Sequence record: MW812339.1
DNA length: 64,000 nucleotides
Direction: 5' to 3' (one strand)
A program made the position numbers and the translations under genes. Under the pieces are notes generated by a model. The model was not told where the DNA came from and searched no databases. It worked only from the letters and a program-made list of their open reading frames with translations. Positions 3,491 to 58,305 of the stretch are shown here, piece after piece; within the stretch, counting starts at the first letter, position 1, and every line of letters starts with the position of its first letter.

Positions 3491-3503
3491 CGTGATTCCT
3501 CGA

Positions 3504-3528: not shown

Positions 3529-3533
3529 CAGCA

Positions 3534-34384: not shown

Positions 34385-34452
34385 AGGCGAATTCCTCTAA
34401 AGGTACAGGTCATAGTATGAACTCGACGACCCTCGGAGAAAAGGAGTATAAA

Positions 34453-37400: not shown

Positions 37401-38169
37401 AGAATCGATTATGGCAGGCTGGCACGACGACACGAACTTCTTCAACCGTCTTTCTATTATCCTGAACCGCGGCTATAACATCACTGACACAAACGGTGAT
37501 TTCTGTTATGCCGGTTTTGCGTTGAACTACGGTCGCGGACGTAACGTGGTGATTGGTTTTACCGGAACGAAACTGCCTGTGGGTGGTGGCGCTGCCTGGT
37601 CTGCCCTGAATCCACGCGTGTACTGGTATCAATCGCGCAATGCGACAGGCATCACCATTACTGGTTACCTGATCCTTGGCGGCCTGTATTACGACTTCAC
37701 GTTAACCCTCAGCACAACAGAAATGACCTTAAAGGTCACGACGCGCGCGACCGGTGACGTACAGACGGTTGATTTGTCGAGTCGTATCCGTCCGGACTAC
37801 ATCGATATTCGTCCGCTCATCAACAATCCAGAGTTGCCTATTTATCATGGCTTCGGTGGGATGTTTGGCGACGTGACAACGGTGGCTCCGACGTATAGCC
37901 GCGATGCCAGCATGGTCAAGAATAGGTATTACGCCACGTTCTTAGATTACATGATTAACTACTCCGCTCTCAACCGCGTTCGGTTTGCAGAGTACAATTG
38001 GGTGGGTGGTTCTGTCACCCCTGAATCGTTGGCTGACTCTATTGTCAATGCCATCGGTTCAGAAGGTGCTTTGGTCGACCCAAACAAAGTACCGCTGTAT
38101 GCCAACGCCGACAACGTGATTGCGTTCAATCGCGGAGGCATTGCTCGCGCGGTGATTATTCGCGATTAA
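34453..38169 (+). CDS. Large tail-fibre-like virion protein 1
   Basis: About 1240 aa; start after AAGGAG; DNPH, KTSYGLDQVQDIPDTQLLIS, GHSH motifs shared with neighbours. Confidence 0.75.
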   Translation: MAVVPDPHFNQPGNKQTGEAVTPIGTKYRMLFPVHAPFFTTSLVVKSGGKTLKLGDDYVITHPYMVGMSRTGYLTHGAVWITNDKYTNNFTMDYHAVGIAEATASQIAAEREANKDKYPTAIECQWDAVVGDVYFPPVDIQFDWENWRGELELMQAIAAIGTKIGQLPPIPDPYIGNRFAPAFPADIMMSGSRQYVNYDNQGGYVAKNNGQAIVYLSSNDYLLFNFKVDTEYNLSSYASNVNAKQFWSMPLGYLGTSSGVQNVGISWDSTSLVMRFAITIAGVEYPVASFPAPKSFMAKFRVRFDRNYDLDTLRCVVTGADGSTKIDTVFDFRNPPSNLVAIFAQYNVLKAVHRGVDFRNSWYVVRGDTWKHNVFPGMAVPDGSDVLTLLKHYHSIVDALYRNAPAHAHIPRVDNPHRDIWGAIRALEQGGIASDATLVYGKNQSQLADYVNTQLPKLADLANKLLRMPAAPQAINGTFGTKPGLTSVTSAVGTDESNGVGAQFTVDAKVIRFLGRDSTTVNAGNNAITFQSGANQLILYPDSRGLLFNGKKLLDPTTVAPYLPGNEGGGDGLFYGTSTATVTINGNGIQSVPFICQFVPPTSDDLGLLVMRKLATDFGTAEDLAATPALIAKLDAMFTGKLVKAKSYVNDLPLTGSIYLDKTSYGLDQVQDIPDTQLLISTLQQAELDKYAVVGHSHQASAFGIDTATDVQFGLVKYSLAVDDATLALDGGEVIRQTTSVTEIEGVAKSLDSGAAIDIIRFGPPGTGTIEGGATFTGWMLTIKAGTYFVGQEYTVPLTTINLTEAFPGAYEDVEMGIYVDVQDNAAVYRIFANKDTAETDTMTAVGIVGTSEDEIVMAEVHSVTRLGDFRELEEHIADDNAHIKRTMTQAEFGFTYGTGGPVWRSGIMDNTRGEGDWRGALADGYYPMGAVQYDDANGRWTFRPNGTSVNDYRFIHNLFPMYLNQGVTANWLSSDTGNASMLESIMAGWHDDTNFFNRLSIILNRGYNITDTNGDFCYAGFALNYGRGRNVVIGFTGTKLPVGGGAAWSALNPRVYWYQSRNATGITITGYLILGGLYYDFTLTLSTTEMTLKVTTRATGDVQTVDLSSRIRPDYIDIRPLINNPELPIYHGFGGMFGDVTTVAPTYSRDASMVKNRYYATFLDYMINYSALNRVRFAEYNWVGGSVTPESLADSIVNAIGSEGALVDPNKVPLYANADNVIAFNRGGIARAVIIRD

Positions 38170-38181
38170 GGAGAACTCTGA

Positions 38182-42363: not shown

Positions 42364-42400
42364 GACGGACTGTCTACGGACAGGTTACGTCCGTAGGTAA

Positions 42401-42441
42401 ACCGCCCTTTCCTTCGGGGGAGGGCGGTCTCCGTTTTATTT
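42401..42441 (+). terminator. Terminator-like hairpin between fibre genes 2 and 3
   Basis: ACCGCCCT...TTCG...AGGGCGGT followed by CTCCGTTTTATTT; a second hairpin CTACGGAC/GTCCGTAG lies just upstream. Confidence 0.55.
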
Positions 42442-42460
42442 CTGATTAGGAGTGTTTGCA

Positions 42461-45400
42461 ATGCCGAGAGAAGACGCGGCGCAGTTTAACGGGAAACTAA
42501 GTACCGCCACCTACCCAAACAAATACTCAACGGTGATTCCCGTTGAGGCACCCTTTTACCGTATCGGTTTAACCTTAACCGTTACTGACCCTGTAACCAA
42601 AGTTAAACGTAAGCTGATTGAGGGCCTGGATTATTTCCTCGCTTTCTACTTTAAGGAATTAGCCGAAGCCGAAGATGACCAAATCTACGGCGGGATTATG
42701 TTGCTGAATGCCACTGATATCGAGTACGAGCTGCTCGCGGTAGGTCGTCAGTATCGCATCCCGGCTTCCGAAATCGGCAAGTATTTGGTGAAGACCGACA
42801 ACAAAGACCCGCGGAACGTTGACTGGTCAGAGTTGATGAAGTACCCGCCTATCATTGCGCCTATCGATCCGCCGAAAGATTTAGAAGAAGCGATTCTGCG
42901 TGATGAAATCGTTAAAGCATTGGATGATATCCGTCAGGGTATTGTTGCGCGCGCGGGTGAACTCGATGAAGCCTTTACCGAAGTTACCAATCTTATTTTT
43001 GAGAACGGTAAGCGAGTCTTCGATGAAGAGATGTATCAGCACCACCTCATCAAAAACGCCCACAACTACACCTGTGCCGATATCGGTGCATTGCCGGTAC
43101 TGGGCAAAGCGGTAGATGCAACGAAGGCATTCGGCCGTACACTGGCTGAGCTGGTGAACCTGATGTCATCCAGCGGCATTCAACAGCAGCATATCGACAC
43201 ATTGTTGGATAATACGCTGGGCGACCTACTGGGCCGGATGCGTGTTCTGAATAATGATGCTATCACTTTCCAGACATCAGTTGGCCACGTCATCACGATG
43301 AAAGGTGAGAAGTTCATCATTACTTCTCCAAAACCACTGACCCTGAAAGCCGACCAGGATAATAATGAACCTGGCCTGGCCACGGAATTCGGTGCAGGCT
43401 TAAACACCCTGTATGTCCACTCCGGTAAGAAAGGGGACAAGTGGGGCGATTATGGGATGGAAGTTTTAGCGCCAGTGTTCAATGGCGTGTTCCTGGTAAC
43501 GCCGGATATGGTCGGGTTGTATTTGACTTCGGTGAAACTGCTTCCAGCCAACGCCTATTTCAAGTCCAGCGACACTCTGAAGATTTACGGTTCAGGGAAA
43601 GAGACCAACAAAGTCTACATGAACGCGGAGTTGCCTGGTGCGACCACCGCAGTAGAAGGTCTGCTGGCCATTACCAACCTGTCCGCATCGGTAGCATCGT
43701 CCACTGCCATTTCGCAGAAAGCAGTTACCGATTTAAAGAACCTGCTCGACAACTACGTCGACGATTCCTACACCATCAACGGAAAACGTTTCGTTGCTGA
43801 CGGTAATGGGAATATGGTTCTGACTTTAACGAAGACCGATTTTGGCATCGATAAGATGGACAATACGGCTCCGTTAGCCAAGCCGGTGACAAAGGCCCTG
43901 AGTACAGTATTAGCCGGAAAGGCCCTGAGTGACCACACGCACACCATCGGCGACCTTGATAACGTACCGTATGGCTCAACCTCTGTTACGGGCCTGGTGA
44001 AGCTCTGGGACGTCCTGGACACCACGAATGATAAACTGGCCACAGCACGCTTAGGTTTTGTGCTAGACCAGAAAATCGACGTGCTAAGCGACAAGATTAA
44101 TACGCTGTTGCCCGCATGGACAGTTGGTGGTGCTTCTTACGGTAATGATAGCTTCCTGCCGATTCCCGCACTGGGTAATTACGAAGGCTACACTAAGAAC
44201 CAGACTTACCAGAAAGGGATGGTGCGTTACCAAAATGGTAAACTCTATTCTCTGCGTAACGGTTCGAACGGCGTGCCTCCAGGCGACTGGGGTATCTACT
44301 ACGCGTATATGGACGTGGCGTCTGATGCTACGCTCAGCAATGTACAGCAGACGTCGGTACGCTATCACCCAGCGGGAATGAGTAAGTTCCCTGGCGTAAA
44401 ATTGCAGGCCATCCTTATCACCGGTCGTGATGCGATCGTGTGTTTAGGCGACGACGGTAAACGTTATCTGGTGTTGTTCAACGGCACTATTGACCACGCA
44501 AAACACACGCAGGTCTGTGAGGTCACGGTTCCCGATTATCAGAACGGTAACGGCACCGCGGTCACCACCAATCCATTCGCACCAACGCCAGAAATGGACG
44601 ATTTGGTCATCAGCGGTTCTAACGTGTATCTGCTGCGTAACACGTTCAATAACTCGTCCTACTATGTTGCGGCGTGGTCTCTGCGTATTGCGGATGTGGC
44701 GAGTAATACCGCGGTGGCTTTTAACCGGGTGACGTTGAATGGTGAAGGTGGGATGTCGGGTGATAACCTGATTATCCGTAATGGTCAAAAAACAGATGCG
44801 ACTCAGACAGGTCAGTTCTTCTCGGCTATCAATGCGGCAGGGATTGTGAAGTGGAATAACGCGCGAAACTTTGTACATGGGCCAGAAGCCTCACACATGG
44901 TGTTTGCGAAGGAAGGGGTGATTCGTGTTAACCACGTTGCGACGGTTTGGTTTGCTTCCTCAACGGGTGCAACCATTAACTTCCAACTGTGGCAAACCAG
45001 TTACCTGTTAGATACCACCACGAACAAAGTCACCCTGGAATGTCCTACCCGTTTCCCAATCACGGCTGACGACGTCAGCGTTAAATACGCCGACGGTTCG
45101 GCCATCGGGGAAGCGAGTGCGAAGTGGGGTGGTGGCTCGGCGAACCGGAGAACGTACGGTGCGGTGATGGAAGACTTCGTCATCTCGCAGACGAATAACG
45201 GTGATCCTGATCTGATGCCGGAAATCTACATCGCTTCGGCGAAAGGTGCAGACCCGTTCGACTTCTTGCGCTATGATTACAAAGTGAATAACACCTACGC
45301 AGGCATCACACTTAACCAAGGACGTGGTTCGGTCTACGAAAGTGGACTTAACTTCCCGTTGTCGTTGGGTGGGAACTCCCCGCTGTTGTGGTTGTCTAGC

Positions 45401-47629
45401 CCACGTGGGCGTTTAGCGATTGAAGTCGAAGTTGACCCGAACGGCACGTATGGCGTACCGGGCTATGGTGGTTTCGGTCCGACCAACAACCGACGCGTTG
45501 TCGATTCCGGTGTTTACGAACAACTGAGTCAGATGGCAATGATTATCACGCCTACCCAAAGCGGCGGGGTATTGAACGGTTGGCAGTCGACAGGCCCTGA
45601 AACTTTCCCGTACAAGAACGTTGCTAATACCTTCTCCATTGCGACTGACCGCTACACGCTGTCTACGACCGACTGGAACAAGATGAAGCAGATGATTATC
45701 GATAACGCGCCAACTGGTGCGGCTAACGGCTACGCGTCTGAATATATCTTGGCGGCTAACAACGCAGGTAAAGCGCTGTTCTCGCTGTGGTTCCTTGGTA
45801 TCGGTACTCCGCAGCAGCTCTGTATCGCACAGGTTGCCTGTACTAAAGTAGTGAACAACGCAAACATTCTCGATATTTATTACTTCGTGATGCAGCCAAC
45901 GTTCACCGCCACCAACGTGACGTTCCCAAGCGTGAGTCTGTTACTGCTGGATTTCTTCAATAACCTGGACTATGGTCTCGACCATGCCTCGCTTGGGGAA
46001 ATCACCGGCGGGAAAACGAAACGCGTAGGCCAACCGTTGCTCGTGACCAATGACGGTATCAACTTTGGCCTGTCCTTGCCGTACACGTTGACCATTCGTC
46101 AGATCGGTGACTTGGGTGCCTTGAACTACATGGCGTCCTTGAAGTTGTCTTCTGGTACATGGTCGAAAGTGGCGGGTAAATCCGCAGTACGTAGAATGGC
46201 ACCAGCCCACCACCCAGAAAGTCCGGTCTATATCGGTCAGACAAAACAGGTGGTTAAAGTCTTTGTGAAGGCTGATGCTGTATTCTGCTCGGGGGAAGCC
46301 TATTCGACAGCGTCGTTCGTTACAGATCCAGCAATGCCCGCAGCCGGTACTCCCGTTATCTTGGCTGGGGTTCAAACGGCAGAGGGTTGGATTCTGTATC
46401 TGACCGAACAGGTAGGTCTGGACTTCGGTTCTTCTAAGTACACGGTCCCTACGTGGGAAGCCGATTTAGAAGCCATGTTCCCAGACAATCACGCCAACCA
46501 AACTTTCTATCTCCACGCACGTGTAGACAACGACACACCGTCTTACGTCCTGGATACCACGCAGCATCCTGACTCGGCGAACGAATTGTTCGTGGGGGTT
46601 GTGAAGACTGACAGTAATCGCATCGTTGAGATTAACGTCGATCGTGTTAAGCGCCTGGGTAATGTGAAACAGGTACTGGAGCACGCCGCGGTTGCGTATC
46701 GTCACGATATGGATGTGGCGCGAGATAGCAAGCTTGGTACGCTGGCACCTCTCCGCAAAGAGGCAATCGGCGCACTTAACGGTTCTGGTGATGGTTATCT
46801 GGACAGTCAGCAAACCTATGGCGTGGTAATGGCGCAAAAGCGTCCGAAGAAAAATGTGTCCTACCGCTTTTCCGATTTGGCGAAGATGAAGTTCTCAGAT
46901 TTCTCGAACGTGGCGGAACGCTTCTGGATACAGTCCCCGAAAGTAACGACGGTGTTGCCTGCAGAACACGCGGCGGCGGCTGCTCGAAACATGTCGTGGA
47001 TTGGCGCGAATGCGGGGGGTGTGGACTCGGCTGGAGGCTATCAGGCGATGACCCGTGTACGCTTCACGGTACCGGGTACGGATGACGGGTCGACGAAGAT
47101 GGTTTATCTGGCGATTGGCGTACCGAAATCGACCATTGAGTTCATGTACAGCCTGACCACCGATGACGATTCGACGCTCACGACCTTCAGCCCGAGCGAT
47201 GATTCGTTGTTCCAGATGAGCACCGCGTTACCGTCAGGTAAACCCGCAGTGCTGACTATCCTCACTACGTTCGAAGACGCCGTGTATTCAGCGATGTTGA
47301 ATAAATTCATCACCTTCGAATTGCGTGCGGATGACCAAAACGGTGCGTTGTTGCGTAGCAGTGATGCCAACTGTCCGTTCCAGATATTCAATGTCATGGA
47401 AACGACCCTGGGCTCCGGCTTCGTGACCAGAGCGATCGAACGTTCTTTCGGGAACTCTACGTTGCTGCTGAACAAAACGGTGACCACGGGGCAGGATGCG
47501 TTCCAACCGCCTACACAGGGCCTGAAATCAGGAAGCACCTTTACCCTCACAGTCGCAACGGAATATGGCAGTGAACACGGTATCGTGGAGCTGGATGACC
47601 TGCAGGTCAATCTTATGTTCCGTACCTAA
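42461..47629 (+). CDS. Large tail-fibre-like virion protein 3
   Basis: About 1720 aa; ATG 42461 spaced from AGGAG; KNAH, KTDFGIDKMDNTAPLAKPVT, DHTH motifs. Confidence 0.8.
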   Translation: MPREDAAQFNGKLSTATYPNKYSTVIPVEAPFYRIGLTLTVTDPVTKVKRKLIEGLDYFLAFYFKELAEAEDDQIYGGIMLLNATDIEYELLAVGRQYRIPASEIGKYLVKTDNKDPRNVDWSELMKYPPIIAPIDPPKDLEEAILRDEIVKALDDIRQGIVARAGELDEAFTEVTNLIFENGKRVFDEEMYQHHLIKNAHNYTCADIGALPVLGKAVDATKAFGRTLAELVNLMSSSGIQQQHIDTLLDNTLGDLLGRMRVLNNDAITFQTSVGHVITMKGEKFIITSPKPLTLKADQDNNEPGLATEFGAGLNTLYVHSGKKGDKWGDYGMEVLAPVFNGVFLVTPDMVGLYLTSVKLLPANAYFKSSDTLKIYGSGKETNKVYMNAELPGATTAVEGLLAITNLSASVASSTAISQKAVTDLKNLLDNYVDDSYTINGKRFVADGNGNMVLTLTKTDFGIDKMDNTAPLAKPVTKALSTVLAGKALSDHTHTIGDLDNVPYGSTSVTGLVKLWDVLDTTNDKLATARLGFVLDQKIDVLSDKINTLLPAWTVGGASYGNDSFLPIPALGNYEGYTKNQTYQKGMVRYQNGKLYSLRNGSNGVPPGDWGIYYAYMDVASDATLSNVQQTSVRYHPAGMSKFPGVKLQAILITGRDAIVCLGDDGKRYLVLFNGTIDHAKHTQVCEVTVPDYQNGNGTAVTTNPFAPTPEMDDLVISGSNVYLLRNTFNNSSYYVAAWSLRIADVASNTAVAFNRVTLNGEGGMSGDNLIIRNGQKTDATQTGQFFSAINAAGIVKWNNARNFVHGPEASHMVFAKEGVIRVNHVATVWFASSTGATINFQLWQTSYLLDTTTNKVTLECPTRFPITADDVSVKYADGSAIGEASAKWGGGSANRRTYGAVMEDFVISQTNNGDPDLMPEIYIASAKGADPFDFLRYDYKVNNTYAGITLNQGRGSVYESGLNFPLSLGGNSPLLWLSSPRGRLAIEVEVDPNGTYGVPGYGGFGPTNNRRVVDSGVYEQLSQMAMIITPTQSGGVLNGWQSTGPETFPYKNVANTFSIATDRYTLSTTDWNKMKQMIIDNAPTGAANGYASEYILAANNAGKALFSLWFLGIGTPQQLCIAQVACTKVVNNANILDIYYFVMQPTFTATNVTFPSVSLLLLDFFNNLDYGLDHASLGEITGGKTKRVGQPLLVTNDGINFGLSLPYTLTIRQIGDLGALNYMASLKLSSGTWSKVAGKSAVRRMAPAHHPESPVYIGQTKQVVKVFVKADAVFCSGEAYSTASFVTDPAMPAAGTPVILAGVQTAEGWILYLTEQVGLDFGSSKYTVPTWEADLEAMFPDNHANQTFYLHARVDNDTPSYVLDTTQHPDSANELFVGVVKTDSNRIVEINVDRVKRLGNVKQVLEHAAVAYRHDMDVARDSKLGTLAPLRKEAIGALNGSGDGYLDSQQTYGVVMAQKRPKKNVSYRFSDLAKMKFSDFSNVAERFWIQSPKVTTVLPAEHAAAAARNMSWIGANAGGVDSAGGYQAMTRVRFTVPGTDDGSTKMVYLAIGVPKSTIEFMYSLTTDDDSTLTTFSPSDDSLFQMSTALPSGKPAVLTILTTFEDAVYSAMLNKFITFELRADDQNGALLRSSDANCPFQIFNVMETTLGSGFVTRAIERSFGNSTLLLNKTVTTGQDAFQPPTQGLKSGSTFTLTVATEYGSEHGIVELDDLQVNLMFRT

Positions 47630-47676
47630 CACATAGCGCTATGGGGCACGGAAGCCCCAATCTAAGGAGTTTGGCG

Positions 47677-48879
47677 ATGGCCGAAATTACTATTCAGTAC
47701 CCGTTAGACCTAACCGGTACACTGACGTCGAACGCCGTAACCCGGCGTGTCACGTTGGGGTCAGGTAAGGTTAACCGGGCATTTGCTTTCCCTGTCGGAG
47801 CGTTCTACGCGGATACCTTCCGCTTAGCAGCTTCGAATAAGCCGGGCGTCTATCCGTATAAACGCGGTGTCGACTACGAGCTTATCCTTGCGCACACTGC
47901 GTACCAGAAGATGACGAAGAACCGTGAAGTGGTAATGGGGGTCGTGGTAACGAACTCTGCCATCCCAACGGATATTGAAGTCTTTGCGCAGATTGTTGGT
48001 GGTCCACAGGCGGCAAACGTCGAAGGTATCCGTCAGCTGATTGCGTCACTGAAAATTGAAGACCGCACCGTCGACTTCAAAGATTTGCGCAATGTGCCGG
48101 ATACGTTCCCTGCGGCCCCGACCTATAAAGACCTTGGTGACATTTACGGTTTTGAATACATCATTACCGTGCTCTCCGGGATTATGGATGCCATCAACTC
48201 TGGCTCAGCGGTACAACTGGAACAGATTAAAGGTATCCTCGACGGATTGAAGAATGACTTCATGTCTGCCCTGAATGCGCACATCAATGCCGAAGGCAAC
48301 GTGCACAATCTGGACATTCATCAGGCCAACGGTTTAACCGAAACCGAAATCCGTGCGCTGATTCAAGGTGTACAGACTGCCATTGATGCCACGATTACGG
48401 ACATCAATAATCTGAAAGCAGCAGACACTGCTATAAATGGACGTATCGATGCGATTGTGGCCTCTTTGGCCGCGTGGAACGATCAGCTGAACTCGGTCGC
48501 GCAGAACTATCAGAAAGCGATGTTGGCTCTGGCTAACCTGAACTCTCTGGTGCTGCAGCTGCAGAAGCAAGTCAACGACATGCAATCTGCGCTTAACGAA
48601 ACGAACCAGCGCGTCGATGACCTGGAGAATCAGGGCAAAGACTTCCAACAGCAAATTGATGCCCTGAACACGCGAGTGACTAACTTGCAGACGCAGGTCA
48701 CGAACAACACCAATGCGATTTCCCAGGCGAACCAGAATTTGGCGAACCACGTCGCTGCGGATAACCCGCACCCGAACTATCTGCACAAGCGGTATGGTGG
48801 GGTGGTTCAGGCCGCTGTCCACGTCAACGCATCGCTCACGACGCGTGACGACGTACAGGCAGAAGCCGGTACTAAGTAA
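47677..48879 (+). CDS. Virion fibre-like protein with trimeric coiled coil
   Basis: YPLDLTG N-terminus shared with the family, about 100-aa Asn/Gln heptad coiled coil, C-terminal HVAADNPHPNYL...YGG fibre motif; start after AAGGAG. Confidence 0.75.
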   Translation: MAEITIQYPLDLTGTLTSNAVTRRVTLGSGKVNRAFAFPVGAFYADTFRLAASNKPGVYPYKRGVDYELILAHTAYQKMTKNREVVMGVVVTNSAIPTDIEVFAQIVGGPQAANVEGIRQLIASLKIEDRTVDFKDLRNVPDTFPAAPTYKDLGDIYGFEYIITVLSGIMDAINSGSAVQLEQIKGILDGLKNDFMSALNAHINAEGNVHNLDIHQANGLTETEIRALIQGVQTAIDATITDINNLKAADTAINGRIDAIVASLAAWNDQLNSVAQNYQKAMLALANLNSLVLQLQKQVNDMQSALNETNQRVDDLENQGKDFQQQIDALNTRVTNLQTQVTNNTNAISQANQNLANHVAADNPHPNYLHKRYGGVVQAAVHVNASLTTRDDVQAEAGTK

Positions 48880-48886
48880 TTTATTT

Positions 48887-48936
48887 ACGAGGAGAGTCAT
48901 GTTTATGGAACATGACTCCTCTCGTTCTTATTTTTT
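48887..48936 (+). promoter_or_regulatory. Long hairpin plus T-tract directly before first Cys-rich peptide gene
   Basis: ACGAGGAGAGTCATGTT-TATGG-AACATGACTCCTCTCGT then TCTTATTTTTT. Confidence 0.6.
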
Positions 48937-48947
48937 AAGGAAGCGTA

Positions 48948-49340
48948 ATGGCGATTTCTATCAAAGATATTCGTAACCGCTTGCAAGTCGTAGAAGCAAA
49001 TGTGGCAACGGGCCCACGTGTCGACGCTCAAGTCGCCACTAAAGCCTATAACGCCGCAGATAAATTTGCAGGATGGACGCCAGCGCAGCTCGATTGTGGA
49101 GGCACCTGTTCGTGGACATGTTCTAATGGCTGCTCGCACGGCTGTTCGAGCTGTTCCGGTTCCTGTTCGTCTTCTTGTATCGGTAGCTGTTCATCGACTT
49201 GTGGTGGTAACTGTTCTGGTTGCTCTGGTTGCTCCGGTGGGTGCAGTTCTTCGTGCACGGGTAACTGTTCCGGCGGCTGCGGTGGTTCCTGTTCATCTAA
49301 CTGCTCAGGGGCTTGCTCCGGCGGCTGCTCTGGACGCTAG
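48948..49340 (+). CDS. CXXX-repeat precursor-like peptide A (49-aa leader plus 81-aa core with 21 Cys)
   Basis: Core CGGT-CSWT-CSNG-CSHG-CSS-...-CSGR; AAGGAAG RBS; beside radical SAM genes. Confidence 0.85.
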   Translation: MAISIKDIRNRLQVVEANVATGPRVDAQVATKAYNAADKFAGWTPAQLDCGGTCSWTCSNGCSHGCSSCSGSCSSSCIGSCSSTCGGNCSGCSGCSGGCSSSCTGNCSGGCGGSCSSNCSGACSGGCSGR

Positions 49341-49349
49341 GGGGAATAA

Positions 49350-49751
49350 ATGGCAATTGGATTAAAAGAACTCAACTCCAGATTGGTTGCGGTAGACCAG
49401 GTTGCGTTCAAAACAACAACTGCGGTTCAAGCCTACATTCGGCCTAAGGCAACCAACAACTCTGATTTGTTTGGCGGTCAACCGCGTGCTCACTACGACT
49501 GCGGCGGGACGTGTTCGTTTAGCTGCTCAAGTTGTTCTGGGGGTTGTACGGGGTCAGCATCAGGCGGGTGTGGTTCAACGTGTTCAGCGAACTGCGTCTC
49601 TGGCTGTTCAACAGGCTGCTCAGGTTGTAGTTCGACGTGTTCTGGTGGTTGCTCAGGTGGTTGCTCAGGTAACTGCTCTAGTGGCTGCGGTGGGTCTTGC
49701 TCTTCCAACTGTTCTGGTTCGTGTTCAGGCGGATGCTCCGGCCCTATGTAA
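49350..49751 (+). CDS. CXXX-repeat precursor-like peptide B (50-aa leader plus 83-aa core with 20 Cys)
   Basis: Core CGGT-CSFS-CSS-CSGG-CTGS-ASGG-...-CSGPM; leader homologous to A. Confidence 0.85.
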   Translation: MAIGLKELNSRLVAVDQVAFKTTTAVQAYIRPKATNNSDLFGGQPRAHYDCGGTCSFSCSSCSGGCTGSASGGCGSTCSANCVSGCSTGCSGCSSTCSGGCSGGCSGNCSSGCGGSCSSNCSGSCSGGCSGPM

Positions 49752-49763
49752 TGGAGGTTACTC

Positions 49764-49970
49764 ATGATCAGTCTCAAAAACATTCGAGACCGTCTTGTTG
49801 CCGCCGAGAAGTACACTACTACTGCACAAGCAAATAGTTATATTGCTAACCAGGGGACGGTGTCTACCACTAACAACCTGGCGTCTTTACCTTTGTCCCA
49901 CTATAACTGTAACGGTGGGTGTAGTTGGTCGTGTAGCGGTAGCTGTAGTCACGGTGCAGGCAATCGATAA
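49764..49970 (+). CDS. Short CXXX precursor-like peptide C (48-aa leader plus 4 Cys)
   Basis: Core CNGG-CSWS-CSGS-CSHG-AGNR; GGAGG RBS; leader homologous to A and B. Confidence 0.8.
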   Translation: MISLKNIRDRLVAAEKYTTTAQANSYIANQGTVSTTNNLASLPLSHYNCNGGCSWSCSGSCSHGAGNR

Positions 49971-49997
49971 CGACGCATTAAAAGTTTGGAGTATGAA

Positions 49998-50885
49998 ATG
50001 AAGAACGATTTGCATCTTGCGTACAAAACCACTTTCAACCACCCACTTCATCTGTCTTCACCTGACTCAGTTCGAGCACACCTCGCAGACCAGGTTCGTC
50101 TTATTGCACAGATTCCCGGCGAGTGGCCGAAAGTGCGCGGGCGTTTTCTGACTAACCCGAATAACTACACTGTTGAAAATACGTTTAAGATCCGTGATAT
50201 GGAAGCCCACAACATCACTATCTTTAACGGTGACGGTAATTCGCGTGGCGTGTTGGTCGGCGGGAAATATTTCTTCAGTGAAGGGATTCTGAACAACAGT
50301 GTCGATTTGGAACTGATGTTCACTCCGTTTGATGAACTGGACTGTAAGCCGGTGGCTCGTCGTTGGTGGAGTCCGGACTACCTCGGGTCCTTCCCTTACT
50401 ACTTCGCGTTGGTCCCTGTTGAAACAGAAAATTATTTCGACACTGAGCCGTACATCGAAATCGAAGGGTATAAAGACCTGGACATTAACTGCTTAGCGGA
50501 CATGATGGCGTACAGCTACAAGTTCGTGTGGGATAAACGTCGCTCCGTCTGGTATGCATTAACTGACGCGCACGAAATCACCAAGCGTATCCGTAAACCG
50601 TGGATGCAGCATTTGGTGCAGACGCGTCACGGCGATTACCCGGCAACTGAAGCCGACTTAAGTAAGCTGGTAAGTTTCCTGCTGACGAAAGTTGAGCTGT
50701 CCGACGAAGAAGCGGAAGCAGTGTCCGAAATCCGTGCCCGTGCGGTGACTCTGGAAGACTTGAAACGTCTGAACGAACGTCAGTACGATTTGAATAAAAT
50801 TCTGGCTGCCTATCACTCGCCTATGCTGCTTGTGCCGGGGGCTAACGTAAACGACGATCCTTTATTCGCTATTGATTATATTTAA
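49998..50885 (+). CDS. Hypothetical protein within radical SAM cluster
   Basis: ATG at 49998 (MKNDLHL) spaced from GGAG; no recognised motif. Confidence 0.8.
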   Translation: MKNDLHLAYKTTFNHPLHLSSPDSVRAHLADQVRLIAQIPGEWPKVRGRFLTNPNNYTVENTFKIRDMEAHNITIFNGDGNSRGVLVGGKYFFSEGILNNSVDLELMFTPFDELDCKPVARRWWSPDYLGSFPYYFALVPVETENYFDTEPYIEIEGYKDLDINCLADMMAYSYKFVWDKRRSVWYALTDAHEITKRIRKPWMQHLVQTRHGDYPATEADLSKLVSFLLTKVELSDEEAEAVSEIRARAVTLEDLKRLNERQYDLNKILAAYHSPMLLVPGANVNDDPLFAIDYI

Positions 50886-50905
50886 AAATACTGGAGCAAC
50901 CTGCA

Positions 50906-51823
50906 ATGACAGACAAAGTAGAATCCAGGATCTCGTCTGAACTGTATGATAATCCGACAATCCTGTCGGTTGTCACAACTTCTAAGTGTAACTTAGATTG
51001 TAGCTTCTGTGGAGGAGCCTATTACATGGATCGCGAGGATACTTCTCGTGAATTTCAACGTAGCCAGATTATGGAGCAGTTAGAACAGAATCCTGGCATT
51101 CAAGAAATTCACTGGACGGGCGGTGAGCCTTTACTGGCACAGCGTAAAATCGAAGATTTCTTTTTCGAGCTTAAAGAAACCCACCCGCACCTCAAGCATC
51201 AGATGTACACCAACGGCTTAAAGATGCGTAAGTCGCACTTGCCGATGCTGAAACAGTTCGACGTAATTTTCGTGTCTATCGACGGCTACAAAAAGTCTGA
51301 ACGTCCGTTCATGAACTTTATTGACGGCGGTAACCACGAAGCGTTGGAAACGCTGTATGAGCTGGACAACTATTACAGTTGGGGTGTCATGACCCGTGAC
51401 CAGCTTGGTGACAAGCGTTGGTACGAGGACTTCATCGAGTTGCATCGTGCGCTGTATCACTACCGCCCAGGCGGGGTGTCGCTGCTGTTTGATGCGATGA
51501 TGCCTAAACCGCTCTCGCCAGACCACGTCATGAACTTTATGTATGGATACTGGAAGATTCTGGATAATATCGAACGCCTGAATATGCAGAATGGCACGGA
51601 GTGTGGCTTGGCTATCAGCAAAATGTTTGATACCGAGTGTAACATCTGCAGCGAAGTGTTGTGGCTAAACGCCGACGGCGCTATCGAGCAAAACCAAAAT
51701 GCTCCTGAGATTGTGAGTGTGGGTTGTAACCGTCTGGCTCGTTCTATCGGGGTAGAAGCGTACAACTACATCAATCGTGTCATTTCTGCTAAACGTCATC
51801 GGGCGGCTAATAATGAGCAATAA
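50906..51823 (+). CDS. Radical SAM protein with short C-terminal Cys segment
   Basis: CNLDCSFC (CX3CX2C), WTGGEPLL, YTNG, VSIDG; C-terminal CNIC and two further Cys. Confidence 0.9.
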   Translation: MTDKVESRISSELYDNPTILSVVTTSKCNLDCSFCGGAYYMDREDTSREFQRSQIMEQLEQNPGIQEIHWTGGEPLLAQRKIEDFFFELKETHPHLKHQMYTNGLKMRKSHLPMLKQFDVIFVSIDGYKKSERPFMNFIDGGNHEALETLYELDNYYSWGVMTRDQLGDKRWYEDFIELHRALYHYRPGGVSLLFDAMMPKPLSPDHVMNFMYGYWKILDNIERLNMQNGTECGLAISKMFDTECNICSEVLWLNADGAIEQNQNAPEIVSVGCNRLARSIGVEAYNYINRVISAKRHRAANNEQ

Positions 51824-53141
51824 TCAACCAATACAGTACACCCCACGTACCTATCAGGTCGTGACCAACCTGTCGTGCAACCTCGACTGCGAATATTGCT
51901 ACGAGCGTAAATACCCACGTAACAACAAAGCGGCGGATGTTATCGACTTTATCCATGCGTGTTTCGAGCGTGATAAAGATATCGAAAACGTGGAAGTCAT
52001 CATCGACATCATCGGTGGTGAGCCGTTCATGCAGCCGAAGCTGCTGATTGCCGCTTTCGAAACGGCGGAAGAGTTGTGTAAGATTCACAACCGTCCGTAT
52101 ATGTTCAGTATCTCGACTAACGGTACGCTGTTAGACCGTGCGCTGAACAAAGAAATCGTTGAGCGTTGGAAAGACAAACTGTCTATCGGCGTATCCATCG
52201 ATGGCCTGCCGGAAGTTCACGACAAATACCGCATCTTTACCACCACCCGTGAAGGCTCTTACGAGCAAGCGGTTCGTGGCTACAATTACCTGAAAGAAGT
52301 GGGTATTGCTGAACTGGGCGTGAAAGCAACCTTTACCATCGACACGCTGCCGCACTACGCCGCAAGTATGAAGTCGCTGATTGACATGTCTGGCGGTGGT
52401 ACCATCTCTGGTAACGTGACGTACGAAGACGTCCTGCCGCGTTCTATGGCGCTGGACATTGCTGCGCAGATGATGGACGTGATGGACTACTGGGTTGAGA
52501 AAGGCCTCCACACCAACCCACGTAACATCATTACCCACATCATTCCAGACGGCCTGGATTTCATGGAAATCTGGAACCCGGACTGGCGTGACAAACTGCT
52601 GCACGATGACACGGTGCGTTTGAACCCAGACCGCCTGCGTCCTTATTGCGGCACGTTAACTCACATGACCTGCCTGGGCTTCGACCGTAAGATTTACGGT
52701 TGTAACCGCTTCATGTCAACGGTAACGTCGCGCTCTGCGGTGTCTGAATTGGTTGGTCGCGAGTTCGTTAGTCTGGACGGCGGTGCACTGCTGGAAGAAA
52801 TCCAGACCCAGTACACCAACTACCCGGAAACCTGCCTGGGCTGCCCAATGAAACACAGTTGTGGTAGCTGCGCCGCTGCTTCTTACGAGAACGGCGAAGG
52901 GACACTGGAAGACCGTAAAGCGTATCACGCTGAACGTCGTCAGTGTGGCTGGACCACCGCGAAGCTGATGGCCGCGGAATATTGGTTCCAGAAAATGGGC
53001 AGTACCAAAGGCTCTGACTTCCACGATAAGTCAGTCTGTTATTGTGCTCGCTGCGTACGTCAACGCAAAGAAGCAAATATATTACAACAATCCGGAGTTC
53101 AGAATGAAGTCAATACTGATTCACAATTTTACGAAGCGTAA
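51813..53141 (+). CDS. Radical SAM/SPASM peptide maturase, CXXX-repeat target-like (TIGR04115-like)
   Basis: CNLDCEYC, IIGGEPF, ISTNGTLL, SIDGLPEVHDKYR; SPASM region YCG..C..IYGCNRF and CLGCPMKHSCGSC (CX2CX5CX2C), then QCGW..AEYWF; start MSNNQP at 51813. Confidence 0.88.
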   Translation: MSNNQPIQYTPRTYQVVTNLSCNLDCEYCYERKYPRNNKAADVIDFIHACFERDKDIENVEVIIDIIGGEPFMQPKLLIAAFETAEELCKIHNRPYMFSISTNGTLLDRALNKEIVERWKDKLSIGVSIDGLPEVHDKYRIFTTTREGSYEQAVRGYNYLKEVGIAELGVKATFTIDTLPHYAASMKSLIDMSGGGTISGNVTYEDVLPRSMALDIAAQMMDVMDYWVEKGLHTNPRNIITHIIPDGLDFMEIWNPDWRDKLLHDDTVRLNPDRLRPYCGTLTHMTCLGFDRKIYGCNRFMSTVTSRSAVSELVGREFVSLDGGALLEEIQTQYTNYPETCLGCPMKHSCGSCAAASYENGEGTLEDRKAYHAERRQCGWTTAKLMAAEYWFQKMGSTKGSDFHDKSVCYCARCVRQRKEANILQQSGVQNEVNTDSQFYEA

Positions 53142-53670
53142 GATGCATTTGGTTGACCGTTTCTTGCGTAAGAAGAAACTGTTCAACGTGCACGCTATCG
53201 TGTCCGGTGAAGACTTCACGGACGAGATTCACAGCCTGCTGATTAAGTACGGCTTGAATGTTATCATCCCTGTCAACTGTGTTGAGAAGGGACATGAATC
53301 AGTAGCGGAAATCGAGAAGCGCAACCCTGGCTTCGAAGCCCGTGTGTTGGCGTATCCGCGCCACAAAATCGAACTGCTTCGCCGTTCAGATATGGAAGGC
53401 AGTCCGGAGAGTATTATTGCGTTGGGGATGTCCTTCCCACGGTTGCGTATTCGTAACCTACGTAATACCACCCCGGTAGATTCCTACTACGCGGAACGTC
53501 AAATCTTCGAAGAACATCTGCTACCGCAGCTGGAACAAGAAGAGCAACACGACATTTCCGTACTGTGGGGTGACGACCTCGATCAGAGCTTCCAAATGCT
53601 GGACTTCGGTTTACTATTTGAACTTGGCCTGATTGAGGAGGACGAATGTCTACTGCTGGCAAAAGCCTAA
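53104..53670 (+). CDS. Hypothetical protein within radical SAM cluster
   Basis: ATG at 53104 after GGAG, overlapping SPASM gene end. Confidence 0.7.
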   Translation: MKSILIHNFTKRKMHLVDRFLRKKKLFNVHAIVSGEDFTDEIHSLLIKYGLNVIIPVNCVEKGHESVAEIEKRNPGFEARVLAYPRHKIELLRRSDMEGSPESIIALGMSFPRLRIRNLRNTTPVDSYYAERQIFEEHLLPQLEQEEQHDISVLWGDDLDQSFQMLDFGLLFELGLIEEDECLLLAKA

Positions 53671-54317
53671 CGAACGACGAAATTCGCGCACGTTACTTCC
53701 AACGCGATTTGCCGATTGACCGCCATGGTAATTTCATGGAACGTATTGGTGCACAAGACCAGGGCCGGACAGGCTTCTGTGCTCTGCTCCATTACCACCT
53801 GATTGAAGGGCTGTCCGACAAAGCGGCGTTAGAACGCATGAAGGCGTATGAGATGTCTACCATCGAAGCCAACTTCACGCTGAAACGTGCGAAAGAGTTT
53901 ATCTCTGACGTGCTGGAAATTGACCTGGACACGATGCGTACCAACATCAAGTCGACAGCGCGTTACATCTACGATGACGTGCAGAAGATGTTGTTGGAGG
54001 TGGATCGTCGTTACGAGAATGATCGTCATGCGTATATCGAATACGATGGCCATCACTATCAAGCCGATGAAGCATCACGCACCGCGCTCGGCCAGTACAT
54101 CCAGGCGAATCACGCCCCGGACTACTGGTTAGATACCCTTAACACGCAAATCGCACCGTTCTCAATTGAGCAGTGCCAGGCGTTGTTAGCGGCTATCATG
54201 AAGCGTGACCAGGACATGCACACAACGCTCGCTGAAACGAAACGTAAGATTCGTGTTCTGGCAGAGGCTCGCGACTTTACAGGCCTGAAAGCGTTGCAAG
54301 AAGAACTGGGCATGTAA
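53646..54317 (+). CDS. DUF4376 domain protein (tail-fibre-associated) with unknown N-terminal domain
   Basis: IEYDGHHYQADEASR...WLDTLNT...EQCQALLAAI...Q...KRKI pattern. Confidence 0.7.
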   Translation: MSTAGKSLTNDEIRARYFQRDLPIDRHGNFMERIGAQDQGRTGFCALLHYHLIEGLSDKAALERMKAYEMSTIEANFTLKRAKEFISDVLEIDLDTMRTNIKSTARYIYDDVQKMLLEVDRRYENDRHAYIEYDGHHYQADEASRTALGQYIQANHAPDYWLDTLNTQIAPFSIEQCQALLAAIMKRDQDMHTTLAETKRKIRVLAEARDFTGLKALQEELGM

Positions 54318-54321
54318 GCAC

Positions 54322-54373
54322 GAAAAATAAGAAAGTACCTCTCTACCCTAGGGTAGAGAGGCCTTTATTTTTT
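54322..54373. terminator. Bidirectional intrinsic terminator closing the radical SAM operon
   Basis: Perfect palindrome CCTCTCTACCCTAGGGTAGAGAGG (54338..54361) with A/T tracts. Confidence 0.85.
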
Positions 54374-54890
54374 AACTGAACCCATTCAGCTCGCCGTTTT
54401 TCCACTGGAGGTTATCTTTACCAGAGTAAACGCGCCACACATAGGCACCCGTCCATTTCAAATGGTTAGGGTTAATTTTCAGTTTGATATCACGGAACGG
54501 ACCGTCACCCACATCGGGCTGCATTTCGCCACGCGTGACTAACGCTTCTGCTGCATCGAGTTTGTAATTCGGCAACATCATGTTAATCAGATTCAGTACG
54601 TAGGCGTCGTCGTCCCAATGTACTTGAGCGTCGGTGGTTGCCGTTGAGTAGACGTCCTCACCTGGCGGGTTCGTGAAGCTGAAGCGGGTGAAATGGTACT
54701 CTTTCGTCCCTTTGAAGTTCGGGCTATCGTCTTTAGCAATCAACGTTAACGAACTATTGCGAGTATCACCTTCTCCGGTCGGTGTGTAAGGCGTCGGTTT
54801 GCCAACCACAACATCGCTCAGTGCCAAGTTCAAATCAGGATTCTTGGCATTTACCATGTCGATAAATACTTCTTGTAACGTCTTTGCCAT
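54372..54890 (-). CDS. Virion protein, GELxGF family paralog 1
   Basis: DTRNSSLTL...FKGTKEYHFTR; ends NGELNGFS. Confidence 0.75.
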   Translation of the reverse strand: MAKTLQEVFIDMVNAKNPDLNLALSDVVVGKPTPYTPTGEGDTRNSSLTLIAKDDSPNFKGTKEYHFTRFSFTNPPGEDVYSTATTDAQVHWDDDAYVLNLINMMLPNYKLDAAEALVTRGEMQPDVGDGPFRDIKLKINPNHLKWTGAYVWRVYSGKDNLQWKNGELNGFS

Positions 54891-54933: not shown

Positions 54934-55446
54934 TCACTTGAAACCATTGAGTTCACCTTGAGTGCCAGACAAGTCAACTTTTAAGGGCAGGATGGTAAAT
55001 TCCCACATCCCTGTTTCTGTCTCCGGAGGAATATACTTAATGTGATTCATGCGTACGGAAACAATCAAGCTACCATTCTCTCCGGCCCGACGTTCAATCT
55101 CGAAGTCCTCGAGAACGAAATATTCACCATTGGCATACTTCTCATCCAACATGCCGTTGATGCTCGCCACGACGTGCCCGTCCATTTGCCAGTCATCTAC
55201 ACCATCACCGTCTATGATTCTACTCGTAATCCCTGTCGGGAGTCGGTTATAATAGATAGACGTCGAGCCAACGAAATAAATGGATTCTTCTTTGGCGGTG
55301 ATATACGTGGTGGTGTTAAATTGTTCTGACGGCCCACCCTGCATTGGGTTGTTGTAGATTTCAACATCATCCAAGGTTGCCGGGTGTGCCAGACTGGGGT
55401 TAGCTGCGTTGTACAAATCAAGCAGCTGTTGGGCGTAATTGATCAT
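54934..55446 (-). CDS. Virion protein, GELxGF family paralog 2
   Basis: FNTTTYITAK...FVGSTSIYYNRL; ends QGELNGFK. Confidence 0.75.
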   Translation of the reverse strand: MINYAQQLLDLYNAANPSLAHPATLDDVEIYNNPMQGGPSEQFNTTTYITAKEESIYFVGSTSIYYNRLPTGITSRIIDGDGVDDWQMDGHVVASINGMLDEKYANGEYFVLEDFEIERRAGENGSLIVSVRMNHIKYIPPETETGMWEFTILPLKVDLSGTQGELNGFK

Positions 55447-55578: not shown

Positions 55579-56109
55579 TTACTGGATAGTAAAGCCGTCC
55601 AGCTCGCCATTAGTGGTGCTCAGGTCGGTCTTAGTGACTTCCTGCTTAATGGTGTATTGCGCCAGGGAGTTACCGAGGAACTTGATGTGGCCATCTTTGA
55701 TAGCAACAGCAATGATCTTATCGGTACCTGTGCCGTCGGAACGTGTGATTGTCAGGTCGCTCAGCGCGAACTCGTCGTCCGGATGGGTAACCTGGAAATC
55801 AGCGTTTACTTTGGCCAGCACTTCGGAATCTTCATCCCAGTCAGCCTGGTCCGCAGTAATCGTTTTGTCACCGATACCGTCTGCAACGTCCAGACGGATA
55901 TAATGGAGTTCCTTCTCGCCGATGAAGTTTGCAGACTCCGCTGCAGCGGTGATGATGAGTTTGGTGTTACGGGTATCACCGCCATCGGCAGGGGTATACG
56001 CAGAGACGGCACCGAAGGTGACATCAGCGACTACCAGAGCGTTAGGCACTGAACCATTTACAGCATTAAACAAGGCAACAAGTTGCGCTTGGGCGGAAGT
56101 AACGGCCAT
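55579..56109 (-). CDS. Virion protein, GELxGF family paralog 3
   Basis: DTRNTKLII...FIGEKELHYIRL; ends NGELDGFTIQ. Confidence 0.75.
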   Translation of the reverse strand: MAVTSAQAQLVALFNAVNGSVPNALVVADVTFGAVSAYTPADGGDTRNTKLIITAAAESANFIGEKELHYIRLDVADGIGDKTITADQADWDEDSEVLAKVNADFQVTHPDDEFALSDLTITRSDGTGTDKIIAVAIKDGHIKFLGNSLAQYTIKQEVTKTDLSTTNGELDGFTIQ

Positions 56110-57402: not shown

Positions 57403-58044
57403 TTACGGGACCGTCAGGAACGCACGCTTGATATTCAAGTATTGCAAGTTCACTGGTTGGCCATTGGTGATATCGACGCGTTCGTGGTCAGGTACCCCAG
57501 CTTCTAACTGCTCACGGAAGAACAGGTAGTTGCGATTGTAATCCAGGGTCTTTTCCACCGGGCGACTATAGTACACATTCTCATTCGGGTCAGCGTAGGA
57601 AGGCCATCCGAATTTGTGCACTGCCTCGTAGAACGACTTGCGAATAAACGGGTCGACGTTGAGTGCCTCCATGATGCGCAAGAACATCAGGTCAGCAAAG
57701 TCTTTGCCGCAAGCACGGGAAAGGTTCCCACAGTCGGTGTCAGGATAAACCCCAACGCTTGGGCGTTTCTGATAGAACAAATCATGGACACAAGCAGCCG
57801 CAGACCAGGGGCCGTCTGGGTGGAGCAACGGCTGGAGTGCGACAGGAATGCTGGCCATGTCAGTTACGAAACCTTTTGGTGCAGTCACATACAGTTGCTT
57901 GTCGGGATGGACGCCCGATAAACGAACCATCTCGTCCATTCCACCCGCTTCACGGTAAAGCGACCGCAGCGAAAAGGCGAAATGAAAATCATCCGTGAGA
58001 ACAAACCACGGTTTCTCTAACAGCTTATAATAAAGTTTTTGCAT
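57403..58044 (-). CDS. DUF1353 domain protein
   Basis: APKGFVTDMASIP...AACVHDLFY...ADLMFLRIM; start MQKLYY at 58044. Confidence 0.8.
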   Translation of the reverse strand: MQKLYYKLLEKPWFVLTDDFHFAFSLRSLYREAGGMDEMVRLSGVHPDKQLYVTAPKGFVTDMASIPVALQPLLHPDGPWSAAACVHDLFYQKRPSVGVYPDTDCGNLSRACGKDFADLMFLRIMEALNVDPFIRKSFYEAVHKFGWPSYADPNENVYYSRPVEKTLDYNRNYLFFREQLEAGVPDHERVDITNGQPVNLQYLNIKRAFLTVP

Positions 58045-58305
58045 AGCATCCTCAAGCCAGGAATTTGACCAGCGAAAGAATAGCCAACAATCCAAACAAC
58101 ACCGGCATTAGGCCTTCTGGCCAATCGTCATTGTTACTCATGGGGCTACTCTCCGAAAGAAGATTGCGCGAAGCATCTTAAAGAAACCGGAGTCTTCAGT
58201 CGTTCTCTCCGGGACGTGCGCTGGGTTTGTCATGGCGTTGTTTCCTCATGGCAAAGACTAAAGCGCGCCACAAGGCGCGCATCAGGGTTACAAACCAGTT
58301 TGATT

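Follow-up and report, generated by a model that had tools for sequence, protein, structure and literature searches.

Cysteine-ladder proteins and radical SAM enzymes behind the tail-fibre genes of a jumbo phage: a possible maturation system for the fibre tip

The operon and its ladder proteins

The 64,000-nucleotide stretch of DNA analysed here (below, 'the window') belongs to the 248.8-kb genome of Erwinia phage pEa_SNUABM_29 (MW812339; 100% identity), a jumbo phage of the genus Seoulvirus, family Chimalliviridae. Between positions 48948 and 54317 lie eight coupled plus-strand genes, bounded on both sides by strong hairpins; they encode three proteins that end in a 'ladder' of regularly spaced cysteines (pep1, pep2 and pep3), two radical S-adenosylmethionine (SAM) enzymes (rSAM-A and rSAM-B) and three partner proteins—an operon that we believe may serve to cross-link a module found, in related phages, at the end of tail fibres. 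Working from the 5' end of the operon onwards, the genes are:

48948..49340, plus strand: pep1, 130 aa; 49-residue N-terminal part and 81-residue ladder with 21 Cys
49350..49751, plus strand: pep2, 133 aa; 50-residue N-terminal part and 83-residue ladder with 20 Cys
49764..49970, plus strand: pep3, 68 aa; 48-residue N-terminal part and a short 4-Cys ladder
49998..50885, plus strand: 295-aa protein (phrog_8030, E 3e-145)
50906..51823, plus strand: rSAM-A, 305 aa; radical SAM enzyme (PF04055, 55 bits)
51813..53141, plus strand: rSAM-B, 442 aa from its ATG; radical SAM/SPASM enzyme (PF04055, 57.6 bits)
53104..53670, plus strand: 188-aa protein (phrog_7988, E 3e-82), with a 38-nt overlap with rSAM-B
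53646..54317, plus strand: DUF4376 protein, 223 aa (PF14301, 33.7 bits, cutoff 25; phrog_8169)

The genes are separated by 9–27 nt or overlap by 11, 38 and 25 nt, and a clear Shine-Dalgarno-like motif precedes seven of the eight starts, that before rSAM-B being weak. An earlier, sequence-only reading of the window had described a layout of seven to eight coupled genes, including the DUF4376 protein, and we find all of its open reading frames (ORFs) at the positions given; the three homologous peptides it described, with leaders of about 49 residues and 21, 20 and 4 Cys, are likewise present, the N-terminal parts measuring 48–50 residues.

In each of the three ladder proteins, which are paralogues, an N-terminal part of ~48 residues leads through a conserved junction into a C-x-x-x ladder. 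Their first cysteines stand at residues 50, 51 and 49 in pep1, pep2 and pep3 respectively, and from there successive cysteines are 4 apart nearly throughout, the exceptions being a few spacings of 3 and one of 8. The cores are made up of Ser, Gly and Cys with a little Thr and Asn, contain no Asp, Glu or Lys and offer no tryptic sites, whilst the leaders have 4–6 Lys/Arg; with ~25% Cys and no acidic or bulky residues, the ladders stand apart from the remaining ORF translations of the window, where the background is 1.8% Cys and Cys runs do not exceed 4. The only PHROG matched by the three proteins is phrog_6085 (E 5e-42, 2e-42 and 8e-24 for pep1, pep2 and pep3), and they themselves have no shaft. 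The run of cysteines at every fourth residue that is the hallmark of TIGR04114 and PF27846 is present in all three; their TIGR04114 scores (18.7, 10.8 and 12.6 bits) fall below the cutoff of 20, and a Pfam search gave no match to PF27846 (CXXX repeat).

A comparison with the orthologous locus of phage SPN3US indicates that the ladders are read as protein. Within the pep1 core 46 of 243 nt differ between the two phages, 37 of these at third positions of the Cys frame, such that only 3 of 81 residues change in this frame as against 13–40 in the other five; pep3 follows the same third-position pattern. As judged from where the substitutions fall, the Cys frame of the ladder genes is under strong purifying selection. 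Taken together with the Shine-Dalgarno-like motif at all three peptide genes, the third-position bias rules out a non-coding or compositional artefact. A recent DNA slippage array is also ruled out: Tandem Repeats Finder (TRF) shows just 2–4 weak copies, and as these repeats are weak and short the ladder is old at the DNA level. The ladder of pep1 is, furthermore, better conserved than its leader (3/81 against 10/49 residue changes between the window and SPN3US), which is the reverse of the pattern usual in peptides that are ribosomally synthesised and modified post-translationally (RiPPs).

Gene callers have largely passed these ORFs by. The annotation of MW812339 places antisense ORFs (00267/00268) over pep1 and pep2, whilst the SPN3US records call the +1 frame over pep2 (SPN3US_0166, RefSeq gp100) and leave pep1 and pep3 uncalled. 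A word search with the pep2 leader returned 3 proteins from a collection of 5.8 billion, which points to ladder ORFs being called only rarely; a profile of leader and junction gave 32 matches among 1.84 billion representatives, three of them spurious repeat proteins. The ladder genes are thus missing or miscalled in the GenBank and RefSeq records of this phage group, and proteomic searches have so far been blind to pep1–3.

The enzymes, their partners and their distribution

PF04055 is found in both enzymes. The top NCBIfam matches of rSAM-B are TIGR04115 (118.8 bits in two stretches; cutoff 350) and PapB (111.6 bits; cutoff 340), neither cutoff being reached; other peptide maturases follow, with QhpD (TIGR03906; 53.9 bits) among the family matches. 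A profile built from 16 homologues finds its best relative in the Protein Data Bank (PDB) in CteB (5wgg, E 7e-33), with an anaerobic sulfatase maturase second; the alignment spans CteB residues 104–428, leaving the N-terminal domain of CteB without a counterpart. The radical SAM motif CX3CX2C is formed by C22/C26/C29, and eight more cysteines are conserved (279, 287, 297, 341, 344, 350, 353 and 378), of which C341/C344/C350/C353 make up a CX2CX5CX2C motif. The Pfam SPASM model itself does not match rSAM-B at E<=1, though the rSAM-B family profile aligns through the SPASM region of CteB. Traits of TIGR04115 seen in rSAM-B are the CX3CX2C motif and a Cys-rich auxiliary region at the C-terminus, and the ladder genes lie 2–3 kb upstream in the same operon.

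For rSAM-A, NCBIfam and PDB searches give generic matches to the radical SAM core (residues ~20–130), all far below cutoffs and mixing peptide maturases with viperin, NrdG, MoaA and QueE. Its conserved cysteines are C28/C32/C35 (CX3CX2C) and C245/C248/C274, the latter three suggesting a twitch-like auxiliary cluster site.

These results bear out most of what the sequence-only reading had said of the enzymes: a radical SAM and a radical SAM/SPASM enzyme are indeed present, the latter with the CX2CX5CX2C motif, and the idea of a Cys-repeat substrate with its own SPASM maturase gains support from TIGR04115 and PapB as top matches and from CteB as the nearest structure. The family search it had suggested gives a divided answer, with PF04055 found in both enzymes, TIGR04115 the best family of rSAM-B at a score under its cutoff and TIGR04114 likewise falling short. 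The outcome it had named as damaging, that both enzymes would belong with cofactor-type families, is not seen for rSAM-B, and applies to rSAM-A only in so far as its generic matches place maturases alongside NrdG, MoaA and QueE.

The 295-aa protein is predicted with good internal confidence by AlphaFold2 (AF2; pLDDT 87.7, pTM 0.82), and the modelled fold has no PDB match at E<=0.001 (best E 0.9), its own orthologue being the single match in BFVD. We take it to be an orphan fold and a conserved partner of the enzymes, presumably a substrate-recognition or scaffold factor; an RRE (leader-recognition) domain was found neither here nor in rSAM-B. Homologues of phrog_8030 adjoin the radical SAM pair at three of the more distant loci described below (L008, E 4e-12; L091; L095). 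The DUF4376 protein has weaker matches to tail and tail-fibre PHROGs besides phrog_8169, and its gene also stands beside the radical SAM pair in L095/L096 and L098. The partners that travel with the ladder proteins are therefore the phrog_8030 protein, rSAM-A, rSAM-B and the DUF4376 protein, phrog_7988 co-travelling within the jumbo clade and in L010, where its homologue follows rSAM-B (E 3e-12).

With rSAM-B as query, tblastn matches 62 named phage records and, beyond these, three distant fragments; the pep1 leader is found in the same 62 records. By host these are phages of Erwinia (34), Salmonella (22), Escherichia (2), Cronobacter (2), Proteus (1) and Enterobacteria (1); no Pseudomonas phage and no other member of the Chimalliviridae is among the tblastn matches to rSAM-B and the pep1 leader. 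The failure of peptides and enzymes to co-occur, which would have told against the sequence-only reading, is thus not observed (62/62). Seoulvirus, Erskinevirus, Wellingtonvirus and Derbicusvirus share one gene order, with the operon always right behind genes of the gp168/gp167 type. The number of rungs is also well kept: pep1 has 21 Cys in five of five genomes and pep2 orthologues have 20–23, while in pep3 of Derbicusvirus and Wellingtonvirus the first two ladder cysteines and the aromatic site between them remain, the Wellington copy having one additional Cys in its leader. In L098, a syntenic 222-kb metagenomic jumbo-phage contig, the pep3 orthologue P0166 (7001–7633) continues for ~140 further residues behind its 4-Cys ladder.

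Among the Salmonella phages, SPFM1, 8, 9, 10, 14, 15 and 20 have shortened orthologues of rSAM-B and the 295-aa protein (P0081-P0085 and P0157-P0161; 5–22% query coverage with high hidden Markov model scores), which look like frame-shifted gene calls or sequencing errors.

In a scan of IMG/VR, a ladder ORF with 6 or more Cys lies no further than 8 kb away at 72 of the 80 loci that hold an rSAM-B relative, and we are highly confident that the radical SAM enzymes and the ladder proteins belong together as enzyme and substrate. A protein so rich in Cys and so free of acidic or bulky residues might also be expected to bind metal or iron-sulfur clusters: on such an account the ladders would keep their thiols free and chelate in the manner of metallothioneins, leaving the radical SAM enzymes to act on some other substrate. 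The composition fits, but the joint presence of ladder and peptide-maturase-type SPASM enzyme (in all 62 genomes and at the 72 viral loci), together with the curated pairing of precisely these two parts in TIGR04114 and TIGR04115, makes this account very improbable.

Relatives of the operon in phage tail modules

The next-nearest relatives of rSAM-B (33–47% identity) are likewise encoded in phage tail modules. Using our own locus labels, these are arranged as follows:

L008 (Deferribacter abyssi contig, prophage), start: GpJ-like tail protein; 147-aa protein (tail-fibre PHROG); 316-aa protein
L008, remainder: 302-aa fibre-like protein with a 28-Cys ladder end; homologue of the 295-aa protein (E 4e-12); rSAM-A homologue (E 5e-13); rSAM-B relative
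L009: core as in L008, with three radical SAM genes
L010, part 1: S74-peptidase fibres beside rSAM-B; phrog_7988 homologue (E 3e-12); two 21-Cys proteins
L010, part 2: 322-aa protein, a phrog_8030 homologue by position (unscored); rSAM-A
L091/L092: cluster flanked by a T7-tail-like gene and a tail assembly chaperone gene
L093/L094: cluster behind a T4 gp13-like gene; a 28-Cys ladder ends a 568-aa protein
L095/L096: DUF4376 gene added to the cluster

The gene content of the operon recurs in L010 in permuted order. The ladder protein of L008 shows weak matches to phage tail repeats, and that of L093 has a precomputed match to PF27846. Elsewhere the tail assignment is stronger: in L101, L102 and L104 the ladder protein matches tail-fibre or tail-collar PHROGs at E 1e-32 to 1e-54, in L105, L141 and L158 it has weaker tail PHROG matches (E ~1e-9 to 1e-11), and in all six the ladder itself is C-terminal. 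For 37 non-redundant ladder proteins the functionally named PHROGs are nearly all tail or tail-fibre families, L141 also matching lipase/esterase; the commonest PHROG is phrog_6085, which aligns inside the longer fibre proteins from leader positions 3–36. Judging by these family matches, the nearest non-jumbo relatives have 'leader' and ladder together as the C-terminal end of genuine tail-fibre proteins.

The unit has a common architecture. The ladder opens with two Cys 3–4 residues apart, then Ser/Thr, then an aromatic residue in 30 of 30 sequences (29 recognised by script, the thirtieth, with Trp, by inspection), the aromatic being Trp in 26, Phe in 2 and Tyr in 1 of the 29 script-matched cases. 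Ahead of the first Cys, an Asn at 10–16 and a Gly at 6–11 residues are both found in 27/30. Within the period-4 units across relatives, Cys+1 is Ser/Thr in 75% and the +2 position Gly in 56%. The ladder stops 2–5 residues short of the protein end in all but two of 32 tabulated sequences, the exceptions being P0166, with its extra ~140 residues, and P0162, which reads like a frame-shifted gene call.

This arrangement bears directly on a second account of the operon, namely that it is a genuine phage-encoded RiPP pathway, in which a leader of ~48 residues would guide the two radical SAM enzymes and the ladder, once freed by a host protease or at lysis, would act as a soluble agent, for example one aimed at rival bacteria or phages or at the host cell, or a signal. 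The leader-plus-core layout and the three paralogous precursors agree with such a pathway, as does the fact that rSAM-B is nearest to RiPP maturases; short ladder peptides also occur with TIGR04115 members in bacterial metagenome-assembled genomes without obvious phage genes (L014, L017, L020 and L054), and the SPN3US enzymes are not parts of the virion (see below). What defines the class, a modifying enzyme together with a precursor that has one part for recognition and another to be modified, would nevertheless be present here in form only. NCBIfam, Pfam and PHROG family searches of the eight operon proteins and their neighbours found no protease, exporter, transporter or immunity gene (as the sequence-only reading had remarked of exporter and protease), although host enzymes could serve; no leader-recognition domain was found in either of the two candidates searched; the core is better conserved than the leader; P0166 runs past its ladder into a further domain; the location within the tail-fibre block is constant across four genera; and in relatives the leader-plus-ladder unit is fused to tail-fibre proteins. 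For this last reason the picture of a leader and a released core is probably wrong, and we consider a soluble RiPP unlikely. The 'complete RiPP pathway' of the sequence-only reading thus keeps its pairing of enzyme with substrate, their co-occurrence and the absence of an exporter, and loses its leader with released core.

How far the tail connection extends into the wider family is less clear. The nearest clade of rSAM-B scores 145–183 bits against TIGR04115. True members, at 420–503 bits, are found beside ladder proteins in L014, L106, L114 and L146, three of these on viral contigs (420–449 bits), and the member in L146 is located between tail-fibre genes; the phage link may extend to the whole TIGR04115 family, the evidence for that clade being thin. 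A scan of genome contigs with the rSAM-B profile recovered mostly generic SPASM enzymes, with ladders at 12/80 loci, and did not recover the Deferribacter locus.

Two further observations concern these loci. In L095/L096, on a phage contig of ~170 kb, two S-adenosylmethionine lyase genes (2234–4502) stand a few kb from the SAM-dependent radical SAM pair. In L011-L013 (Margulisiibacteriota/Termititenax), TIGR04115-like enzymes have as neighbours proteins of ~670 aa whose cysteines, more than 100 in number, keep the C-x-x-x register.

Surroundings, proposed function and significance

The features on either side of the operon are:

34417-38169, plus strand: giant tail-fibre/virion paralogue 1, 1250 aa; phrog_2163 N-terminal region
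38182-42363, plus strand: giant tail-fibre/virion paralogue 2, 1393 aa; phrog_2163 N-terminal region
42452-47629, plus strand: giant tail-fibre/virion paralogue 3, 1725 aa; SPN3US gp168 orthologue; phrog_2163 N-terminal region
47641..48879, plus strand: gp167-like virion structural protein, 412 aa (phrog_2163, E 2e-102); SPN3US gp167 orthologue
48887..48925, plus strand: upstream hairpin, a stem and U-run between the gp167-like gene and pep1 (RNA dG -23.6, z -5.4)
54338..54361, both strands: downstream hairpin, 10-11 pairs (RNA dG -19.7, z -3.8), intrinsic-terminator-like
57403-58095: tail assembly chaperone

The gp167-like gene is the immediate upstream neighbour of the operon, and the three giant paralogues (34417-47629) match PHROGs 7557, 8078 and 7449. 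In SPN3US, gp168 and gp169 are classed as 'Tail', gp168 as 'Tail fiber protein', and gp167 as 'Tail' with 85 peptide-spectrum matches (PSM) in wild-type virions (PMC7411985). The ladder cluster follows directly on four tail/fibre genes of the same strand, the tail-module setting looked for in a tail-fibre protein, and its placement among virion genes recurs at the same position in four genera. The sequence-only reading had already remarked on this placement and on the missing exporter, and was in this respect on the right track. The window as a whole holds four consecutive virion proteins of the phrog_2163 type (34417-48879) alongside three ladder proteins.

The stem of the upstream hairpin is maintained through compensatory changes in an alignment of the window with five relatives (six phages, four genera), and its loop has five invariant positions, T-x-T-A-T-G. 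By analogy with late promoters of the phiKZ type, the hairpin may be a terminator whose loop doubles as a start signal for the phage's own RNA polymerase. The downstream hairpin, which is the palindromic terminator noted in the sequence-only reading, is bidirectional, closing both the operon and a convergent minus-strand gene. On the minus strand, three paralogues of ~170 aa (54372-54890, 54934-55446 and 55579-56109; phrog_4862) are convergent on the operon; their counterpart in L098 is PF25613 (DUF7941) and their SPN3US homologue, gp160, is labelled 'Head, antler' (Table S2, PMC7411985).

Published proteomics for SPN3US provides a view of the helper proteins. For gp162, gp164 and gp165, which correspond as orthologues to the 188-aa protein, rSAM-A and the 295-aa protein respectively, purified samples (wild-type, tailed and head) give 0 PSM, and crude or prohead-plus-tail preparations give 2–7 PSM (Table S2, PMC7411985), gp162 being seen with 3–7 PSM in four of five crude mutant preparations (PMC7411985); gp161 and gp163 are not listed (Table S2, PMC7411985). 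Absent from purified virions and present in crude preparations, these proteins are helpers made during infection and not virion components. The ladder proteins themselves do not feature in the published SPN3US virion tables (PMC7411985); their ORFs are absent or mis-framed in the reference record and their cores lack tryptic sites, so this absence is uninformative.

A third account takes the ladder proteins as assembly factors which, once modified, would scaffold or chaperone the folding or joining of the giant fibres and then stay in the cell. The company they keep (fibre genes, the tail assembly chaperone at 57403-58095 and the DUF4376 protein) would suit such a role, as would their not having been reported from virions, were it not for the annotation gap just described. 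With the ladder being, in relatives, the C-terminal part of the fibre polypeptide itself, we regard this as improbable.

We favour instead the reading that the cluster is a maturation system which covalently cross-links a Cys-ladder module of the tail-fibre tip, here split off as mini-proteins, and give it a probability of about 0.55. Its component parts differ in strength: a destination in the virion or fibre is somewhat favoured for the ladder proteins, whilst thioether chemistry on the ladders is, from the kinship of the enzymes, an evenly balanced proposition. Several points weigh against this reading. The putative cross-link chemistry is taken from family resemblance only, and every curated family cutoff is missed (TIGR04115, PapB and TIGR04114); the Asp/Glu acceptor of PapB-type enzymes is absent from the cores of pep1–3; the upstream hairpin stands between the fibre genes and the ladder cluster; on viral contigs, the N-terminal part in most ladder proteins of the canonical TIGR04115 type is ~110 residues long and matches phrog_6085 alone, such that the clear link to tails is limited to the branch nearest the window and L146; and, weakly, there is the absence of pep1–3 from the virion tables. 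Comparison of the gp167-like protein with the shafts of the longer fibres that bear a ladder, moreover, gives no similarity in sequence, leaving the docking step set out below without direct support; the related notion that this protein is the detached shaft of the ladder proteins (a 'split fibre') likewise finds no support in sequence.

Were the cluster to work as such a maturation system, the ladder proteins would be made in the reducing cytoplasm, probably late in infection. There rSAM-B, using SAM-derived radicals and two auxiliary Fe-S clusters, would bond Cys sulfur to carbon atoms of residues close by, one such bond after another along the ladder and most probably in the form of thioether bridges, with the phrog_8030 protein presenting the substrate and so replacing the recognition domain that rSAM-B lacks. 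A second modification could fall to rSAM-A, or else this enzyme might act at the invariant Cys-Ser/Thr-aromatic site that opens the ladder. The product would be a compact, covalently stapled rod or knot, independent of disulfides, serving as the distal end of the fibre; in the window phage it would take the form of separate mini-proteins, whose N-terminal part would dock on the giant proteins of the fibre or baseplate periphery from the genes just upstream, and assembly would be aided by the DUF4376 and phrog_7988 proteins.

Four known systems provide points of comparison. The closest is the TIGR04114/TIGR04115 pair (Pfam PF27846), in which a C-x-x-x repeat protein is likewise encoded beside a radical SAM/SPASM enzyme whose core begins at the N-terminus. 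The branch found in the window is a sister to it, distinguished by an additional radical SAM enzyme, by the phrog_8030 protein and by a junction of its own in which one aromatic residue is invariant; to our knowledge, and from what we could find in the literature, nobody has determined the chemistry of the TIGR04115 system. The PapB/freyrasin system of ranthipeptides comes next, PapB being the second-best family of rSAM-B (a Deferribacter relative scores 163 bits over nearly the whole model) and sharing with our proposal a series of Cys-based cross-links set along a single peptide. The acceptor for PapB is an Asp or Glu that follows the Cys by four residues; the window cores have neither residue, which makes this acceptor rule inapplicable to the ladders, and rSAM-B lies below the 340-bit cutoff. 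CteB, the SCIFF maturase (5wgg, 5why), is the best solved relative over both the radical SAM core and the SPASM region, but has an N-terminal domain that rSAM-B lacks and a substrate with six Cys as against up to 21 in strict period. QhpD, finally, is a radical SAM/SPASM enzyme that forms thioether bridges within a protein that remains in its complex, and hence a precedent for a structural, non-secreted product; it is distantly related, acts on another substrate (the small subunit of quinohemoprotein amine dehydrogenase) and is not viral.

On the side of the fibre, the arrangement recalls the S74 intramolecular chaperone peptidase and the tail-fibre assembly chaperones, where helper genes by the fibre genes also act on the C-terminal end of the fibre. 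Those helpers fold or trim the fibre, and we know of no tail-fibre maturation device of this kind that uses radical chemistry or adds covalent cross-links; a search of the literature found no paper on the operon genes, on CXXX-repeat systems or on radical SAM enzymes in connection with tail fibres.

The known substrates of radical SAM/SPASM maturases are secreted peptides and a small number of enzyme subunits. Their involvement in fibres, if true, would represent a new post-translational modification of the virion, and the first use of RiPP-type radical chemistry in making a virus particle; it would also provide a function for the long-orphaned CXXX-repeat/TIGR04115 system, so far catalogued in silico only, and explain how a protein made in a reducing cytoplasm could be braced covalently and independently of disulfides. 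It is a tentative extension, which we would place just short of even odds, that diverse phages, from Deferribacter prophages to the 250-kb jumbo phages, build the distal end of their fibres from a Cys ladder stapled in the cytoplasm by C-S bridges of radical SAM origin. For the jumbo phages discussed here, such a system would bear on the receptor-binding structures of a group studied for the biocontrol of Erwinia and Salmonella.

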